NCBI GenBank assembly: GCA_904063045.1
Contig: CAJFCJ010000001.1
Location: 2,976,001 to 3,040,000 of the forward strand
Origin: Dimorphilus gyrociliatus
Taxonomy: Eukaryota > Animalia > Annelida
Direction of reading: 5' to 3'
Length of the DNA: 64,000 bases
The first letter of the stretch is position 1. Each line of letters begins with the position of its first letter. Below, piece by piece: positions 12,036-53,100 of the stretch. Both the position numbers and the translations under genes were made by a program. The notes beneath the pieces are model-generated. The model had not been told where the DNA came from, searched no databases, and saw only the letters and a list, made by a program, of their open reading frames with translations.

Positions 12036-15000
12036 GATAATCATTTATTAAATATATATATATATATATTCATATATGTATGTTATATTATACGCTATAT
12101 GTAATATTGAATTCAGTATAAAGCAACAAAAAATTATTGCACAATAGGCGTTTATTTTGTTTTCCTATTGAGAAAAATGAAAAAAAAACTACGCAAGATT
12201 TAGATTCAAGTAAGCTTCTTTTATATAAGTAAAATGAATTAGGATATGCATTGCCAGAAGGGTTTAATCAATTCTTATTGATCAGAAGAACCTATTAACG
12301 TCTGTTAGGTATAGAAAATAACTTGTTGGTAATAATTGTATATATATGCCTGTATTTCAAGTCTTTTCTCTTTCGTTTACTTAGGCCAAAAACCAGGAGT
12401 TTTTATTTTCTTAGCATATTGAAATATATATAAACATGAACAAAATTCAATTTGCATCTTGTACAAATTCAATCAACGACACATTCAGAACGAAACAATA
12501 ATTCTTCTATCAACGTAAAGAATATTAAAAACATTTCGATTATATTATCATTTCTACTGAAGTATATATTATATCATTCATGTCATTTTTATTCATTTAT
12601 TTGAAAATTCGACATTTTATTGACTAATAAAGCATTTTTAACTATGTCACATCCGTTAGGAAACTGCTCATTTCCTTTTTCACAACAACATATACTATAT
12701 ATATGTTGTATAAATTATACATGTATATATCCTTATTTTTCACATGACCTTAATTTTTCTACATATATAAACGTCAATTTTCTAAGGATTCGTATTAATT
12801 TCCGTTAGATATTTTCAAAATCTCTATTGCTATTATTTTTCTAGAGCGCCATCTATAGTATTCAAGTAATACTACAGAGAATAACACTTATCATTGTTTG
12901 TTTTGCAATATTCGTATTTATTTCAGTACATAAGATTTCCAAAATATTTATACTTATTCGATTAAATCTATATATATTTAATCATTATTAATATTTAACA
13001 AAAAGAGCAATAGATCGACCCAATTCAGAGACAAATCATCGTTTACAACAACGTCAATAAAACAGTCTATTGTGAATAAATGGAATATTTATAGTAGGCT
13101 TAAAAATCGTTAATTCCTAGACAAATGGATAACAAGGTAAAATCGAAAAAAGGAAGGAAAGTAAGAGAGAGAAAGATGAATAATCATATAAATGTTATTA
13201 ATAAGTAGTAGACAAATATTATTATTGTATGTTTATTTATATATACATATAGACTATACTATAAGCCATATATATATGCTGTATACATAAAATACTATTT
13301 AATATACTTGAAGATTATTATATCGAAGGAGGTATTGCGTAATATTTCGAGAAATATGAAATATGCTTGAGCCTTCTATATACTATATATATATAGATAT
13401 ATATAAGAACGTGTGTGAATTTTCTTCTTTGTTGCTTCCCAGCCTAGTCACGAGACCTTATAGGTAGTTTATTTTTACCAATTAGTCACATATTGTTCTC
13501 TCTTCTTAAAGACGTCCATTTCTTAATATATAAAACAATAAATAATTATTCATATATGGAATAATGAAGTTATAAATAACGATAAATATATTTTGAAGCC
13601 TTTTAATTATTGCTTTAATTAATATTTAATTAATTAGTTAATTAATTATCTAATATATCTATCGTTTCATAATTTTCTAATAAATTTTTCCAACCAGTAT
13701 ATATATTGCGTAATCTATTTTTTATTTTTACATAACGACTCTTAATATAAGATATAATGAATTTAATTGAAATGTTAGGTTAATAAATTCAAAATTTAAA
13801 TTATTATTAGAAATTTAGAAAAAATATTCAATTATTTTTTTGGAATTTGTACCTTTTATACCTAAATAGAAAGTTTTTATATAAATAGAGAAAAGATAAA
13901 GAAATTTATCATAAATTTTTTACTAAAAAGCACTGAAATAGTAAAAACACAATTTTCTCTTTATTTTTACTTGATAAATATTTATTAAAAATTTGTTTTA
14001 TGCCGTTAAAATATAAAAATTTCTTCAAAGTAATTCGAAACCAGCTACATATGATAAGTTACGAGCTATGCAATCAACCTTGACATTAAAACAGACTTTT
14101 AGGTATGACTAAATCTTGTTATGAGACACAACTGGCAGTTAACGCTGTTTGCTTGCAGGAGTAGGAATAAAAATGAATTGCGCTCTCTTCGCCTCCGATC
14201 TTGTCTTTTTTATCGGTAAATATATACATTAAAAGTATAAATATCATATATTAACATATATATATAACTATTATTTCATTAATTAATGATATTTTGATCG
14301 TTAAATATTTCTAACGAAAGAAGCAGAATATGTGTTGTAATCTGAAAAAGGTAAACAAATGAGTGATAATAGGTTTATTTTGATAAAAATTGATTAGAAT
14401 CATATATCTTAACAATTTTAACATTTCGCAGCGTTTTATAACAGGAAGGCAATTCTAAACCAGTTACCTATCACTTTTTAAGATGAACTATATACGAAGA
14501 GAAATATATACTAGGTGTAGCAAAGGCTGTTGCTATACAATCGTAATACACAGCTGACTGTTAGGTGGTTTATATAAAACTGTAAAATTTCTGACCGTCA
14601 CGTAGATGGTACATAATAATAGTAATATTTATTGAATAGTGACTGATTTTTATTGATATTTTTCTATTTTTTTTGTTCTCTTTTTTTTTATTTAATAATA
14701 TTCAATAGGAATTTTTTGGTGAGTCATTAGTACCTCGCAAAAAAAAAAAACATCGCTTTTAATACGTTATTAGCCTTTATTTGCGTATTGCATAAATACA
14801 TTCGTTTCGTATTATAAATATTTGAATATTTAATTTTTAGTTAATATTTTATTATGATATAAAGATTTTATTCTTAGTAGGTCACTTAATGTGTTGCAGT
14901 GATAAAAATAGGGACGATGTTATTTTGTAAACAAAAAAGTATAAATCTATTTTTTTAGTATCATTTGATACTGTATTGTTTTTTTAGCAGACTATATTTT

Positions 15001-15168
15001 TTATATTAAGTGTTTTAATTCGAGGTCAGTGTTCTTTAGAGTCTATATAGGAACCTAAGATTAAAGTACAAAACAAAAATTTCTGTAGGTCATGTGTGTT
15101 ATTGACGATCATTGTTTAGTATGACCAGTCACCAGTTTTTCCTGAGCTGAAAACGAGGCTCAGAAAAC

Positions 15169-15182
15169 TCGTGACGTCACGA
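15169..15182. promoter_or_regulatory. Perfect 14-bp palindromic CRE/ATF site in the WDR26 promoter
   Basis: TCGTGACGTCACGA (TGACGTCA core), about 190 bp upstream of the WDR26 ATG. Confidence 0.65.
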
Positions 15183-15369
15183 AGCAAAATAAAGGAGACT
15201 GTCTACATTATTGTTGATTTTCATCAGAATTTACCGAAGATAAAGAAGTTGGCCATGAACAAGCTTTAACCAATCGCTTAATTTAAGTAAACTGGCCTCG
15301 ACGTCGGACAGCGAAGACAGCGGTAAAGCTAGTCCGCCGCGTAAAAAAAAGAGACTGGCCACTACAATA

Positions 15370-18300
15370 ATGCAAGCGAACGGCTGTGAGAATAATCATG
15401 ACGGTGATGATACCCACGTATCGAACGGTTCATGCAATGGAACTTCTTCGGTACCAACTGCAAACAGTTCGAGAAAGAAAATGTCGAAAAAGGACATGGA
15501 TATTGTCCGCCTTATTGGCCAGCATTTGCGCAACCTCGGACTCAAGTAAGTATTTGCCAAATGTTTTGCATAAACAATAATATAATATTTTAAAGTAAGA
15601 TAGCCGAATTTGAACAGTCGTTTCCGGTATTTAAACTTTTTCATAAACGCCGCCTAGTGGCATATTTTTGCATGGGATATTTTTTGGGGAGTGAGTAAGA
15701 TGTCAACGTTCCATTCGCCCATGGAGCATTGATATCAATTTGTCAGTTCTTAATCCAAATCTTTAATATTTCGTTGACAAATTCTTATTTTAGAAGGTGG
15801 TAACTTTATAGTTTCGGTAGAAGTAATATTCTTTTATCGTCATAAAAACCATAATATAAACAAAAATGTAAGAGAATTTATTTGAAGAATTAAACAACGC
15901 ATCTTGGTATTTTATAACGTTATTAAATTAATTTTTCAAAATATTATCTCTCCTACGAAGCTGTATAAAAAATTTTTGCACAACAGAATTAAGTAAACTA
16001 TATAGATTCGTTAAGCATGTCAACATTCTATACTAGTCAAGAGATGATACTTTTTCCCAAGATACCATCTCATCTAATAGATAACTGAACGTATTAATTT
16101 TTTCTTTTCCTCTTATATCTTTAAAACAAAACGATAAAAGCAAGGGAAAAACTACATATTGTGTCGAACTAACCTACTGCCTTGATTAAAAATTTCTATA
16201 GAATATCCTATTTATCGAATCCTTTTAATATAAATCGATTAAATACAGCATTTAGTTTTTATTATTACTCTCCCTCTAGTAATTTTTTTAGCATTACAGT
16301 TTTAAATTATTTGAAAAATTACTAAATATCCGTTACATTTGGACTATTTTACATTCAATAACAATATTATCATATTTTTTTTTTTAAGTTTTATTCTATA
16401 AATAAAATTTAAGAAAATAGGAAAACTCCCTCTTTATATTTAACTTTTTAATATGATTACAATAAAGAAACTGTTTGGTAGCTCTTTCCTTCTCCCCCCG
16501 CTCCCCCCTTCTCTCTTTTTCAATAAATAAAACCTTCGTTTCGTTTGCCGTCAAGTTCACTGAACTTGGGTGAACTCTTCAACGAGTGTCAACGGTCTTA
16601 GCGTTTTCAGTCTATAGTAGTAGTTTTTATAGAATTTTTTTCTGCAATTAGATTTTTTTATATTTAGGGGAAAGAAAACATAAAACTTAGGGAAGTTGTT
16701 TTTTGTTAAATTTTAGTATTTCTACTAATAATTACATAGGAACATTTTTATTTAATATTCATATGCACGATCTTATTTAGTTTAAAGCGAAATGGACTTA
16801 TCCTTTAATACTGGATGGTAGGATTACGTTCTATCTTGGTATGACCTTTTTTAAAATGCTCATTTTCCCTTTTTTCCTCTGTTGTAACATACCCGCTGGG
16901 CTGTAAATTTCTCCTGCTAGTCATTAATGACAATGACTCCGTTTTCATAATCGAGACTGCTTTCGTCCTCTGCATAATTAAATAACTCTCATTGTATGTT
17001 CGTTCTTTACGCTAACATAAAGAAAATTATATGATGCATCTTGGACGAAATTAAAACTAATCCTTAATTGAAAAATGTAATTTGCAAATCATCAAGCTTC
17101 TAAGAAGTTCTAATTCTAAACAAGCCTTAAAAATATTCTTTGAAGCTGTTGCAAAAAATTGTTAAATGCAATGAAATGCGTGAACTTTTAGAGCTATTTA
17201 AGAATGTCTTTAAATTGAACTGTCGACGAGAAAAAATCGGATTTGATAAGATGTTATCGAAGCATTTATCTGTTCTATTACCAGATAGCCATTGGTGCAG
17301 AGCAGGTTGCGAAATAGTGAGACTTAGGCGTTGGAAATGCGCATGCTCCGCAGCGGTCTAAATAATCATAATGTTACCAGGGTGGGTTAGACATTTTGAA
17401 AATTGATGTGAAAACAGCATTAGATTTGACCCAAAAACACCAGAGGAAATAGCTGAATCTTTGTACCATTATATAAGCAGTTGTAATTTATGTAATTGCG
17501 ATAAAATATTGATCTTTTACAGATTAGGCTTTTGCATTAGTACTAAAAATTCTTTTGTTGAATATTTCTTATTTATTTTGCTGAGAAAAAATTGCAAAAA
17601 TTCTTGTTTTTCTTTAATTTTCTCAAAGAAAATCGATAAGTAAATATTGTAAAGAACATTGATAACTTTAATTTTGAAAATAGCTGCAAAAGCTTAAATT
17701 TAATTCATTGTTTACATTATTTCGTTAGAACTATTAAAACATATCCAATTGTGGATTGAGAAGCGAAAAATATTAAAAATATACATTTATTTACATTCGT
17801 AGAATTACATAATAAAACATTTTTGCACTAAGCTTCATTCAGCAAAACGATAATGTAATTTAGGCCAAACACGTGTATGTTTTGCAACAAGTCTAAATAA
17901 AAAAAATAGATATTTTTCTTTGCAAAAGATTATTTAAAAAGAGAAATGTTTTTCTTAGATTAATTAACTCTTAATTAATTTTAACTATTCACTTTCAAAA
18001 CCAAGCGAATCTGTTGATATATAGTATCTTTCAAACTAATTAAACTTTTTCCCTTCAGAATATTGAAGATTTTTTTGTTATTTTTTTGTTTTCTAATTCT
18101 TTATTTTTTGCAAAATATTTAAAAAAAAGACATTCCCTTTGAGGTTACCTTATCGTAACTATATTACAATAACGTTTCTATGGATCAGTATTTCTGCCAC
18201 GGAAATTTGAAAGAATGGCTAAGCTTATTTTTCCTTTTTCAATTGAAAAGATGGATAAAATTTTCCCTATTCTTCCTTCTTCGACTTTTTGTTTTGTAAT

Positions 18301-21300
18301 AAAAGTTTACTACTTACTTAATCATAACATTTCAATATAAGATTATTAAATATTCTCTCTTTCTCTCACTTTTATTTACCGATGATAAAACTATATATAT
18401 ATATATACATATATAAATATTTTTTTTAAATTTTCTTAATATTATTCCGATTGATATGAAAACCACTTATAATCATACCTTTAATGAATATTATAATTCG
18501 GATATTTTACTTGCTTAATTTTAACAAATTTATTATATATACAGTATGTAATATATGTTTATTTACTATACTGTATTTCCATATTTTTTTAAAGCGGTTT
18601 TATTAACCCTTGTCTCAATCTAATTGTTTCTTTTGTTCTTACAGTAGAACTGCAGAGCAGCTGATTGTAGAATCCGGATGTAGTCTGGAACATCCGTCAG
18701 CCGCTAAATTCCGATCTCATGTGATGGAAGGGCGTTGGGATTTAGTAAGTACTTAAAATGAATGTTCATATATTATAATGGAATGGGTATCGATTAGCCA
18801 TTCGTATGCAGAATTTGAGGCCTTTGTTTCGCACGCATGGCTGTTTTGCAAGAAAAGTAGGGCGTATCGTCATAAATTATGAGACTACTCATTAATATTT
18901 ATATATTTATCATATGTTTAGTTGGCAACACTAGAAACATTTTGTGACTCAGCTGTTGCGCAATATTTTGTTTGTTTTTGAGTTTTCTATATAGTTTTTA
19001 TTATTAGTTAAGCCAATCTTTTATTAGAAAGCTTACTTGAACGCAAAAGGTTCTTCTACAATTCACTGGAGGCAAGCTATTATTCACTTTTTTTGGAAAT
19101 AAATACCCAAAGATAAATAGACGTGTATACATAAATTTATAGATTTTTTTAAAGGCCGCTTAGGGTTTACTGGGTCAGAATGATCTAACTAAATTTTCAA
19201 TGTTAGCGACCGTTTAAAAGTAAAGGAAAATTCTGACACAATCTGTCTCTTCTTGGGCTATCAAATTAAGGCTCTTTATTGACTTTTGGCCTTTAGAAGA
19301 CTGCCATATATTGGAAAATTTGAATAGCTTAATTTGTTCCCTTGTATATGAGCAATGTCGCAAATATGTTAGTCATATTTTTAAATACCTGTTTTACTAT
19401 TTAAAATATTTTTCTATAAAATGGTTTGTTAAATTTTTATCCTTCCTTAAAACTAAACAGAATGTTTTTAAGCATTATTTGACAATCGATTCTGATTAAG
19501 AAAAACGTGATTATGTCTGAAAGTTTACTTTCTACATCATCATTCTAGGCAAAATTCCTTAGGAGGGTGTTCCTGAGTGAATCACATGTGTCATACGTTG
19601 TTGTTTTTTTTACTCATATTTAACAATCAATTATTATGCAGTGAATATATATATTATCGTATTCTCTTGCTTCCCTAACAGTATAGTGCCCTGGTAATCC
19701 AGGGTACAGCAAGAATGTACCCGCTATTAACTGCTTTTTTCTGTTATGGTAGAAACTTAAATTAGAAATGTAGCCCCCTTTTACTTTAATCGTATAAAAC
19801 TATTTCAATATTCTTTCGTATTGAAAATATATCATCTGGTTTTTATAAACATTGCGCAATTTATTTTACTACACAGCTTTTACGACCAATGATTTATTTG
19901 TAGCCTATTGCTCTTGTGTACGCATATAGCAGCCTTGATCCCTTCTACTTTTTATATACTCTACTAGTTGACTATGTTTTTACATTAATCAAAATTATTC
20001 AGCTGTATTCTGTAATTATGTAATATGGTTTTTAAGTCGAATAAGAAAGCTTCCACTTATATTTTCTTTGTCTTTATCCGAAATTATTAATAGCAAATAT
20101 ATTTAAAAGAAGATAGCAGAAGATAATTCTATATTTATGTACACGTATCTTTTTTATCCTATTGCATTAGCGATAATAAAATAAATATCTTGTATTGACT
20201 CTTTTCAAATATCAACTTAGAAAGTGTACATTTTTAATTCGCTATAAATTGCAGTCATTCTGTTTTTATTATTTCAAAATACTGTATTTTTTTTAATTAA
20301 AGCTTGAACGATCGAATTTCTATAAGTTTTATATTGTGTTATGTAGATTTTATTATTGAATATTTATATATGGTGATAAATATGATTCGGGTAATGTTGT
20401 GCGTAGAAAAGAAGAAAATATGTATAAAATTCTATTAAAGTTATAGGCAGATGATTAGAGAGAACCCTTTATTGATTTCCAGCATTAAATTGACTGTTAC
20501 GATTGTGGTTACAGAAGAAACCCACAAATCTAAGAAATACGTTTCATAAAACAACTACATTTTTTTTCTATTATACTCTCCGACAGGTAACAAATTTTAG
20601 GAAGCTCTACTTTATATAATAGTTTAATTGACTTTATTTTATATGGAAGATATATATATATATATATATATCTTGGGTAAAGTAAAAGAAAACCTGGATT
20701 AATGTAGCTTTCGAATTTCCAAAAAGAACACACCTTTACGCCTTTATTGTAGTAACTATAATAAAATGTTAAATTATGTTTTAAATTAAGTATCTTTTTT
20801 TAATTGAATTATTCTAACAAGCCTTATTAAAGTAGAAAGTAATTATTTTTGCTCATAAATATATGTAGATTATTATACTCTTTACATTTGATCAATATAA
20901 TACCTTGCAGACACAGCTGCTGATATATTCGAGTGATTTTGTCCACCTGTGCGAATTTGGTGTTAAACATTTAAACTTGCCTTAATTTGATCTTAATCTA
21001 TCATTAGCTAGGCAATCAGTATATTAAAATATATGTAATATATATATATATATAATAAGTTTTTGCCAACATAATGATTATGTAGGATTATTATGTAAGA
21101 GAATAGTAATTGTAAATAATACGCACATAAGTTGTTTGTATGGTAACTGCAAAATTTAAGATTGATTTAATATGCTTAGTTGTTTTTTTTCATTATTGTG
21201 CTCGTGGTGTTATAGAAATTTCAACTCTCTAAAAAGAATAATTTTTATTTATACTTTAACTCACAGGCCGAAACGTCCTTATCCGATTTCAAAGATCTAG

Positions 21301-50158: not shown

Positions 50159-53100
50159 ATGGGTACGAGCTCATGGAGGCAATTTCGCCTTCTTATGTGG
50201 AAAAATTGGCTTATTCAAAAGAGAAAGACAGTTTTAACCTGCTTCGAAATTGGTTTACCTGTGTTTTTTGCAATAGTTATATTTGGTATACGTCAAATTG
50301 TTGAAGTTACAGACCACGATAAAGCTGTTCAATGGAAACCCTACAATATTCCAAAACTATCAAGAAACGATAGTCTAATCATGTATACCCCTGATAATCA
50401 GTTAACGAAAAACATACTAAATGATATGAAAAATGACTTAAAATTAGCAAGAAAACGTAAGTTAAATCTCTTAAAAAATTGAGAAATTAAAGGAAAAATA
50501 TTGAATAGATTACATATCCCTTTATAATTTAAGCTTTTATAAAAATCTCTATGTTGGCTAAGAATTAGGAACATAAAATAAATCAATATAGAAAATAAAC
50601 GATTTTTACTTTTAAACCAGAAATTTTCTTTCACTTTTATTGCTAAGCACTTATTTAAATAAACAAGTACAAATATTTATACGTACATTGCAGTCGCATC
50701 TCACCCTGTTTTTAATAATATACAATGAATATACTGTACACATTGAGTGATCCGTTAAAAGTATCCAAATGTATTCTACCTCTATTATAGTTGATTCCTC
50801 TTTTTTTTTATGACAGCTATTGGTTTCCCTTCGGAAAAAGCTCTTGAATTGCATATTGAAGATTCTGTACGAGGTGAAGAATACAGACTCTCTGTTGGAG
50901 TTGTATTTACTAATCTAAATGGCAGTCAATTACAAGATTCAATTAAATATAAACTACGATTACCAATTGATACCGATGGTATCTTGGGTCCACGCCGTTG
51001 GTTTACAAAATCTGTATTTCCTGCTTTTCAAACTCCTGAGCCAAGAGAAAATGGCCAAGAAGATTTTAAGCCAGGTTATACTAGATGGAACTATCTAACT
51101 TTTCAGTATGCTGTTGATAAATCAATTATAAAAAATATTAAACCTACGTTTGATGCATCGAAATATGATGTTCAAATGCAGAAACTTCTACATCCTCCTT
51201 ACATCGACAACCCTTTCCTCAATATTATCCAATTTCAGTTGCCGTTTATTATACTTTTGTCCTTTATCCTTCTTGTTCCATCCATTGTCAAGGACATAGC
51301 TTTGGAAAAAGAAAAACGTCTAAAGGTAATATATATATATAGAGGAGAAAAAGAATATAAAAATGTAAAACATTGTTGTGTTATTTTCAATAGGAATCGA
51401 TGAAAATGATGGGATTGAAGAGTTGGTTGCACTGGAGTGCTTGGATAGCGAAATACTTACTTTTTATGATGATAAGCATTTTACTATATACAATATTTTT
51501 TTGTATACAAACTGGTAAAGGAGGAGTGTTTGATAAATCAGATCCTATCTGCATATTCGTGTTTTTATTTTTGTATGCTATATGCACAATTTCATATTGC
51601 TGTATGATCACTACATTCTTCTCCAAGGCTAATTCAGCTGCTGCTGCGGGTGGAATTCTCTTTTTTGCCACATATACTCCATATTTTTTCTTGTCTACCC
51701 AAGTTCAAGAGTTAACTACAGGAGTAAAATTTGCTTCATCTCTTCTACACAATCTTGGAATGGCTTATGGTTGTAATGTAATCGGAGTTTATGAAGGTAC
51801 AGGTGAAGGAGTACAATGGAACAATATTGGAAAGCTTGCGACTGAGGACGAAAATTTCAAAATGTCGGATGTATTCTTGATACTTTTAATTGATACCATA
51901 CTCTATGGCATAATCACTTGGTATGTTGATAATATTCACCCAGGTGAATTTGGTCTTGCTAAACCGTGGTATTTCCCCTTCACCAAGTGGTACTGGTGTG
52001 GAGGAGCTCAAAATTTCACTGGTACAGATGATGACAATCTCGAACATGAAGTCAATACCGAAATGTTTGAACCGATTAACCCTGATATTGAATCAGGTGT
52101 TGAAATAAGAAACTTACGAAAGCAATTCAAAGTTGGAGGGAAAATAAAGACAGCAGTTCGAGGCACGACGATTAAAATGTTCAAAGGTCAAATTACAGCT
52201 CTACTTGGTCATAATGGAGCAGGAAAAACAACTACTATGAATATGTTGACGGGCTTTATTTCTCCTACGTCTGGAGAGGCTCTTGTAAATGGATACAATA
52301 TTAGAACTGATATCGATTCAGTGAGAAGCAGTTTGGGCTTGTGTCCTCAACACGACATTCTCTTCGATAATCTAACAGTTGAAGAGCATCTAGAGTTTTT
52401 TGCCGCACTGAAAGGATGTCCCAGCGGGCAAATAAAGGGCGAAGTAACCCAAATGATAAAGCTTTTAGGTCTTGAATCAAAAACAAAAAAGCTATCAAGT
52501 ACGCTTTCTGGTGGTCAAAAACGAAAAGTTAGCGTTGGAATAGCTTTAATATATGGATCGAAAGTTGTTATACTGGATGAACCTACTTCTGGAATGGATC
52601 CTGAAGCGAGAAGACAAACATGGGACATTCTTCAGTCTCAGAGAGAAGGAAGAACAATTATTTTATCAACTCATTTTATGGACGAAGCGGATCTGTTGGG
52701 CGATAGAATAGCAATTATGGCTGAAGGAGTAGTTCAATGCTGCGGAACAAGCTTATTCTTAAAATCGAAATACGGAGTTGGCTATCATATGACTATTGTA
52801 AAGCAACCAACATGTAATGTTGATTCTTTGACAACGATTATAAAAAATTATGTCCCAGAAGCACAAATGGAGTCAAATGTAAGCGCTGAACTATCGTACA
52901 TTTTACCTCAGAAGTGTAGCAACAAATTTGAGAGTATGTTCAGTCATCTTGAAAGCTCAAAAGATTCTCTAGGAATTGACTCGTTTGGAGCAAGCGTTAC
53001 AACAATGGAAGAAGTATTCTTAAAGTATGTAAAAATTCATCAATTTTTTTATTATTAACTGTAAAACAATTTAACCAATAGAGTTGGAGAATCGATGGAT

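Follow-up and report, generated by a model that had tools for sequence, protein, structure and literature searches.

In a 64,000-nt stretch of Dimorphilus gyrociliatus DNA (contig CAJFCJ010000001.1; hereafter the window, to whose + strand all coordinates refer), exon 1 of the WDR26 gene carries an in-frame CUG codon (15292–15294) upstream of the AUG that opens the sequence MQANG (15370–15372), and the explanation that best accounts for its features, which we consider probable, is that both codons are used, with two proteins made from one mRNA by leaky scanning. Initiation at the CUG in this species is, on comparative sequence grounds, very likely. An N-terminal extension of WDR26 was already known from vertebrates; the member of the family described here, the CUG and its context as the conserved element, and the homology of the extension across distant animals are new. 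The gene is a WDR26/Gid7 orthologue, encoding a subunit of the CTLH/GID ubiquitin ligase, because it combines a LisH motif encoded at the 3′ end of exon 1 (15499–15543) with a CTLH-type match in later exons (PF21889, E 0.002, below the Pfam cut-off) and a WD40 match (PF00400, 38 bits, above the Pfam cut-off, with more WD40 exons seen downstream), and because the named relatives of its N-terminus among the profile matches are WD repeat-containing protein 26, including those of Homalodisca vitripennis and Stegodyphus mimosarum. WDR26 builds large oval CTLH/GID assemblies and is a human disease gene, responsible for Skraban-Deardorff syndrome.

The reading frame of the extension is closed on its 5′ side by a TGA (15256–15258) and stays open from there to the main ATG, whose position was confirmed by a sequence check. 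Translation of the 26 codons from the CTG to this ATG (15292–15369) gives LASTSDSEDSGKASPPRKKKRLATTI, in which initiator tRNA reading the CUG would put Met at the first position. Of the 11 codons that separate the TGA from the CTG, not one is ATG or differs from it by a single base, which makes the CTG, in the context aaaCTGg (A at −3, G at +4), the earliest codon at which translation in this frame could start. The extension has a G+C content of 53%, compared with 28% in the 1 kb upstream, and a 37-codon open stretch has a chance of ~0.04 at the base composition of the window. By itself, the window sequence is thus only slightly out of the ordinary, and it is the comparison between species that carries the case. 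An earlier note on this DNA, made from the sequence alone, had described the GC-rich extension, the CTG and its context and the lack of an upstream in-frame ATG, all of which were borne out, and its coordinates for the main ATG, the TGA, the CTG, a short upstream open reading frame (uORF) and an AG dinucleotide at 15286–15287 proved exact on re-checking.

Start codons were compared in the DNA of 13 distinct WDR26 exon-1 loci (the window and 12 others), which are not independent phylogenetically, so that the P values given here are rough. The start column is CTG in 12 of the 13 loci and GTG in the other; all 13 have A at −3 and G at +4, and the second codon is GCC in 11/13. Nucleotide conservation starts at −3, upstream of which no column is identical in 10 or more of the 13 loci. 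The GTG occurs in a fish-like locus (L011) whose relative L014 has CTG; a change from CTG to GTG would alter an internal residue, but would keep a start codon as a start codon. As a control, conserved Leu columns of the LisH motif use all six Leu codons, with CTG in 9/48 cases (19%), and the chance of finding CTG in 12/12 cases is ~2e-9 if the loci are taken as independent, which is only roughly true. In L010, as in the window, the CTG is the first near-cognate codon after the stop, and in L003 the upstream stop lies 4 codons before the CTG. No in-frame ATG precedes the CTG as far as the upstream stop in the window, L001, L003–L006, L009, L010, L011, L014 and L015, while L007 and L008 have one further upstream, adjoining an element like a cAMP response element (CRE) that is described below. 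All 13 loci lack an ATG, whatever the frame, in the interval from the start codon to the main ATG (~15.8 expected in total; P ~1e-7), and the main ATG has A at −3 in every locus. This absence of intervening ATGs, together with the A at −3 of the main ATG, is the design expected for leaky scanning from both starts, and the comparison identifies the CTG itself and its context as the conserved element. Under this explanation, some scanning ribosomes would start at the CUG, whose A at −3 and G at +4 form the best non-AUG context, and produce a form 26 residues longer; the others would pass it and, encountering no AUG in any of the three frames, initiate at the main AUG (15370). FGF2 and MYC are other genes with dual CUG and AUG starts used by leaky scanning.

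The presence of the leader in mRNA was assessed with contigs of four runs (X1, X4, X7 and X8, of which X7 is a declared RNA-Seq library) aligned to positions 13100–19000; such contigs can miss rare isoforms and do not fix the true 5′ end. The relevant contigs span 15162–15545 in X1, 15176–15255 and 15226–15475 in X8, and 15227 to 15545 in X4 and X7, and all are collinear with the genome, the leader being unspliced through the CTG. The end of exon 1 at 15545 is joined by a GT..AG splice to 18645 in X1, X4 and X7, and because of this joint and the almost complete lack of intron cover, these three runs are taken as RNA. No splice joint was found inside 15227–15545 or near 15286–15292 in the contigs of the four runs, and the AG at 15286–15287 is unused as an acceptor in the assembled transcripts. 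The transcript therefore holds all three elements (uORF, in-frame TGA and CTG), and, by these contigs, the mature mRNA includes the leader and has no coding exon 5′ to it. Two outcomes that the earlier note had named as fatal to its proposal, an upstream ATG exon joined at 15286–15287 and a transcript start downstream of 15292, are thus not what the contigs show, which begin upstream of the CTG and run collinearly from 15162, 15176 or 15227 to 15545; nor does the extension lack conservation, another such outcome, being strongly conserved at the protein level. The transcript is also present in coral metatranscriptomes. In X1, a second joint leads from the exon-1 donor at 15545 to 16781 (GT..AG, depth 10.8), into a contig at 16781–17157 with 17 mismatches and 19 gap letters, which could represent either a minor alternative exon or a similar copy at another site.

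The peptide was compared more widely by a word search that took as query the 95 residues encoded between the TGA and the exon end, which returned 16 exon-1 open reading frame (ORF) fragments, and by a profile built from these, which gave 369 matches, of which 120 were listed. Among the 120 matches listed, 75 carry the motif LASS(S/G)(D/E)S(D/E)DGG..PPP.KK.R in frame upstream of MQ.NG, a count made with a pattern requiring the P-P-x-K-K-x-R/K core and hence not an independent measure of that core. The motif lies 25–33 codons before the main Met in most carriers and 72–80 codons before it in fish-like ones. Many of the other 45 fragments begin at ATG and come from a gene caller that found no ATG, GTG or TTG upstream; as the same would hold in the window, they are not evidence that the extension is absent. 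The extension is better conserved than the stretch from MQANGC to LisH (alignment A1), with P, P, K and K of the basic motif invariant. Across the aligned core, codon positions 1, 2 and 3 differ at 0.30, 0.27 and 0.60, and 1120 differing codon pairs comprise 495 synonymous and 625 non-synonymous ones. Within the basic motif, the codons for Pro, Arg and Lys change from species to species with the residues constant, lengths differ by whole codons, and an open frame is found in 13/13 loci and in the 75 fragments. By these signatures, the extension evolves as protein-coding sequence, and the codon-level comparison across animals that the earlier note had called for yielded the coding pattern, with third positions differing twice as often.

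This pattern bears on the alternative that the region is plain 5′ untranslated sequence or a DNA or RNA regulatory element with an incidental frame. A non-coding conserved element does lie nearby (15172–15197), conservation over the 8 nt that follow the CTG extends to synonymous sites, and a variant that breaks the frame was seen once (see below). The excess of third-position differences, the residues kept as codons change, the whole-codon length changes, the frame open throughout the loci and fragments, and a published human peptide from the homologous extension (PMC5834625) nevertheless make this alternative extremely improbable. A start at another near-cognate codon in the frame, either the ACG at 15301 or the CTG at 15355, is also very unlikely: both are in frame and the latter has A at −3 and G at +4, but neither is conserved in the other loci, the conserved peptide begins upstream of both, and the ACG has T at −3. 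The CTG at 15355 forms part of a second in-frame CTGGCC (15355–15360), 5 codons before the main ATG.

Several observations weigh against translation of an import-competent extension from the CUG. The predicted fold of the RNA that follows the CUG does not exceed those of shuffled sequences in stability (z = −1.1), and a start-enhancing hairpin 3′ of the codon was accordingly rejected. In the X4 contig, the 24 letters preceding 15227 differ from the window, and a minor spliced form with an upstream exon could escape the contigs, which drop rare isoforms. These 24 letters matched nowhere in the window with up to 3 mismatches allowed, and their last 7 equal the window sequence displaced by one base, for which reasons their origin as an upstream exon or a spliced leader was rejected and they are read as a diverged allele or species. 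The lone X8 contig over the A8 run within the Lys codons (depth 5.4) has A9, which would shift the extension relative to the frame of the main ORF; since X1 has the two upstream single-nucleotide polymorphisms of X8 yet shows A8 at a depth of 173, we lean towards a homopolymer error, and the A9 may be such an error rather than a real allele. Conservation in arthropods runs ~10 codons upstream of the CUG, where a further upstream start may exist. Finally, the predicted nuclear localisation signal (NLS) of the extension is only a consensus match, and the human AUG form is reported with a predicted NLS of its own (PMC7561725).

The isoform question leads to a further alternative, in which the extension is coding but is read from an AUG in an unseen upstream exon or promoter, the CTG being an internal Leu codon. 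Beyond the X4 letters and the escape of rare isoforms, it would draw on the codon before the CTG, which is AGT or AGC in 7 of the 13 loci and so places an AG at −3/−2, and on the AG at 15286–15287 in the window. No pyrimidine tract precedes these AGs, however, and the RNA is collinear across 15227–15545 in four runs with no joint. Protein and nucleotide conservation outside arthropods ends at −3, an ordinary Leu codon would vary as the LisH controls do, and the CTG-to-GTG change would alter the residue. A vertebrate WDR26 gene model based on expressed sequence tags also lacks an upstream AUG (PMC3105428). An upstream AUG therefore has very little probability as the source of the extension, and initiation at the CUG is preferred.

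Named carriers of the motif are insects of five orders (Homalodisca, Nesidiocoris, Timema, Diploptera and Popillia), and fragments whose AUG part closely resembles that of the spider Stegodyphus carry it as well. Two unlabelled arthropod-like loci, L007 (closely like the Diploptera and Timema fragments) and L015, both have CTG. The arthropod peptide conservation upstream of the CTG has the form K-F-H-H-G-D-x-L-A-S (P0005, P0007, P0011, P0024, P0030, P0034 and P0048), and in L007 (330–360) and the Timema protein P0029 an in-frame ATG overlaps the CRE-like element, giving MTS.SKHCSAVAKV. An extra start further 5′, or else a conserved element in the RNA, may be present in arthropods.

Five fragments have a vertebrate-type AUG part, with KKKKRL before LisH, and these fish-like fragments open a 72–80-codon extension with LASA.SSSDSETGGASPPPRKK.R, their start column reading ACT CTG GCC or ACT GTG GCC. 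In vertebrates, Ivanov et al. 2011 (PMC3105428) describe an ACG/CUG-started WDR26 extension conserved from human to fish in all vertebrates, with a size difference of ~9 kDa for the human protein, which shows a minor larger band on a western blot. One peptide of the human extension was recorded by mass spectrometry in a proteogenomic study (PMC5834625). The extension is still unannotated in GENCODE v35, and our literature search found no functional study of it. The vertebrate extension as described by Ivanov et al. (PMC3105428) and the one in the window share the gene, the position before MQANG and the lack of an AUG between the two starts, and the fish-like loci also share the start column and the opening motif LAS..SSDS..GG.SPPPRKK.R. 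They differ in length: the extension has 26 codons here and 72–80 in fish-like sequences, where an extra 45–55 codons stand between the motif and MQANG. Because the fish-like extensions open with the same motif in the same position, the vertebrate extension is, by sequence, homologous to the invertebrate one, the additional codons having been inserted after the motif and before MQANG. The vertebrate extension with a similar motif that the earlier note had mentioned is therefore real, both in the literature (PMC3105428) and in the fish-like fragments.

Wide conservation among invertebrates is not described in that study (PMC3105428), which did examine non-vertebrates; the only case reported among them is an AUU-started extension of fly WDR26, judged independent in origin. 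The Drosophila case (CG7611) is thus another non-AUG extension of WDR26, here in an arthropod (PMC3105428); our literature search for CG7611 with a non-AUG start found no paper. Neuronal pentraxin receptor (bioRxiv 10.1101/2024.02.16.580719) also combines a near-cognate start in a strong context with a downstream in-frame AUG and none between. In dual starts of that type, the longer form carries a targeting signal, which in WDR26 is predicted. Compared with most reported dual-start cases, the CUG of WDR26 and its context are conserved far more deeply, from invertebrates to vertebrates, and the arrangement would be ancestral to a wide range of animals and homologous to the vertebrate extension. 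The earlier note had proposed conserved non-AUG control of a nuclear versus a cytoplasmic ligase subunit. Its deep conservation held, as the CUG, context and motif occur in insects and in spider-like and fish-like sequences, but a simple nuclear/cytoplasmic switch is less clear in vertebrates (PMC7561725).

The leader of the window also contains a 4-codon uORF in a frame other than that of the extension, in a fairly good context (gccATGa). It starts 37 nt upstream of the CUG, and its stop lies 22 nt before the CUG, as the earlier note had it and as is also the case in the transcript, and 100 nt before the main AUG. The uORF is conserved in 0/12 of the other loci, whose upstream ATGs differ in place, frame, length and distance, several loci having none within 87–150 nt. 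For this reason a conserved uORF was considered and rejected, and on this comparison the uORF is a lineage-specific addition. Given general reinitiation behaviour, it would be expected to favour the AUG, because ribosomes that have translated it would more often have become competent again by the time they reach the AUG, 100 nt beyond its stop codon, than on arriving at the CUG after 22 nt. That the uORF lowers use of the CUG in this way is a tentative suggestion, to which we give slightly less than even weight.

The extra piece would be a short, probably unstructured tail with an acidic Ser cluster, an S-P site in many lineages and the core P-P-x-K-K-x-R, laid out like a phospho-regulated monopartite NLS. 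We take the Ser patch STSDSEDSG to resemble casein-kinase-2 sites. Across species, the core P-P-x-K-K-x-R/K holds and fits the NLS consensus, and the S-P is kept in many non-arthropod and fish-like sequences. The CcN module of SV40 large T antigen comprises a casein-kinase-2 site, a proline-directed kinase site and the NLS PKKKRKV. WDR26 has the same order and spacing (an acidic Ser cluster, ~8–10 residues, S/T-P-P and K-K-x-R), but the likeness is one of layout only, and the S-P is replaced in insects. Before LisH, the AUG form of the window has RKKMSKK, which does not fit the NLS consensus, and many invertebrate AUG forms are without the KKKKR patch that vertebrates have there. The KKKKRL patch of the vertebrate-type fragments matches the predicted human NLS quoted in PMC7561725, in which the predicted NLS of the human AUG form occupies residues 111–121 and its deletion reportedly shifts function toward the cytoplasm. 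Because the window AUG form is without a consensus NLS and vertebrates have KKKKR, the two forms seem likelier to differ in localisation in invertebrates than in vertebrates. The longer form would enter the nucleus with higher efficiency or subject to kinase regulation, carrying CTLH/GID assemblies along, and we regard a nuclear import function of the extension as evenly balanced between likely and unlikely.

Alternatively, the extension may be translated with its basic motif serving as a cis pseudo-substrate or gate on the WDR26 propeller, as a dock for a partner or as a phospho-degron rather than as an import signal. This is suggested by the binding of the human WDR26 propeller to the basic R-K-R-K-W of its substrate NMNAT1, which is also part of the NMNAT1 NLS (PMC7616709), by the invariant basic core adjoining an acidic, phosphorylatable patch, and by the predicted NLS already present in the human AUG form (PMC7561725), beside which a second is not obviously needed. 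The fit of the motif to the monopartite NLS consensus, the usual helix-breaking prolines before it, and the many invertebrate AUG forms that lack the vertebrate patch speak against it, and we consider this alternative unlikely.

Coordinates of the features are collected in Table 1. The CRE-like palindrome upstream of the leader takes the form GTGACGTCAC then AAGCAAAATAAAG(G/A)AG across six loci, 120–144 nt upstream of the CTG (134–144 nt in the five other than the window), and a TGACGTCA-type core occurs in 11/13 loci. It is probably a core-promoter or 5′-leader element. Three contigs begin at 15226–15227, ~30 nt past ATAAA, and other contigs start upstream of the element; the contig starts ~30 nt after ATAAA suggest a core promoter consisting of a CRE and a TATA-like element.

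Table 1 Features of the WDR26 exon-1 region in the window.
Feature	Position	Strand	Remarks
CRE-like palindrome GTGACGTCAC then AAGCAAAATAAAGGAG, 26 nt, non-coding	15172–15197	+	Near-identical in the window, L001, L003, L004, L005 and L006
Exon 1 in transcript contigs	15227–15545, some contigs 5′ to 15162 and 15176	+	RNA contigs
uORF of 4 codons, ATG AAC AAG CTT TAA, context gccATGa, in another frame than the extension	15255–15269	+	Inside RNA contigs
Upstream in-frame TGA closing the extension frame	15256–15258	+	Sequence
Start context AAA CTG GCC TC, proposed CUG codon 15292–15294	15289–15299	+	13-locus alignment
Predicted 26-codon N-terminal extension LASTSDSEDSGKASPPRKKKRLATTI	15292–15369	+	No ATG in any frame inside
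Acidic Ser patch STSDSEDSG	15298–15324	+	Conserved as SS.S.DGG in the alignment
S-P site and PPRKKKR, fits monopartite NLS consensus K-K/R-X-K/R	15331–15354	+	P, P, K, K invariant in A1
A8 run within Lys codons	15343–15350	+	A8 in the window, X1, X4 and X7; A9 in X8
AUG-started part of exon 1, MQANG to LisH	15370–15545	+	Main ATG context acaataATGc
WDR26 exon 2	18645–18745	+	GT..AG joint 15545 to 18645 in X1, X4 and X7

Elsewhere in the window, an Rfam scan matched two divergent tRNA genes, at 683–755 (−) and 958–1030 (+), and these were the only matches found. An ABCA-type transporter is encoded almost without introns by two long ORFs (51400–53058 and 53321–55843, +) with ABC2 membrane, ABC_tran and R1_ABCA1 domains; in a word search, the best relative of its 840-aa ORF has 1374 residues and 71% identity. 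Very deep contigs of 31–46 nt with 3 mismatches align to 14659–14697 in all four RNA runs, and probably reflect a common repeat or low-complexity word, not local expression.

As the CUG and its context are shared, along with a motif of 20 residues, by invertebrates and fish-like vertebrates, this start ranks among the more deeply conserved non-AUG starts, and its depth argues for a function of the long form of its own. It also corrects the impression that such extensions had separate origins in different animal groups and provides a rule for annotation, in that invertebrate WDR26 models starting at MQ.NG miss 25–33 residues. A bolder proposal, which we hold to be possible but rather improbable, is that in most invertebrates the CUG form would be the sole form of WDR26 with a consensus import signal, so that the stringency of start-codon selection would set the amount of nuclear CTLH/GID, with the Ser cluster as a kinase gate. 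If this is true, the inputs to stringency would be eIF1 and eIF5 levels, eIF2 availability and lineage-specific uORFs, and such control would have been missed since the protein studied structurally and biochemically seems to have been the annotated one that starts at the AUG. Translational control of the localisation of this ligase would then be older than the split of the major animal groups.

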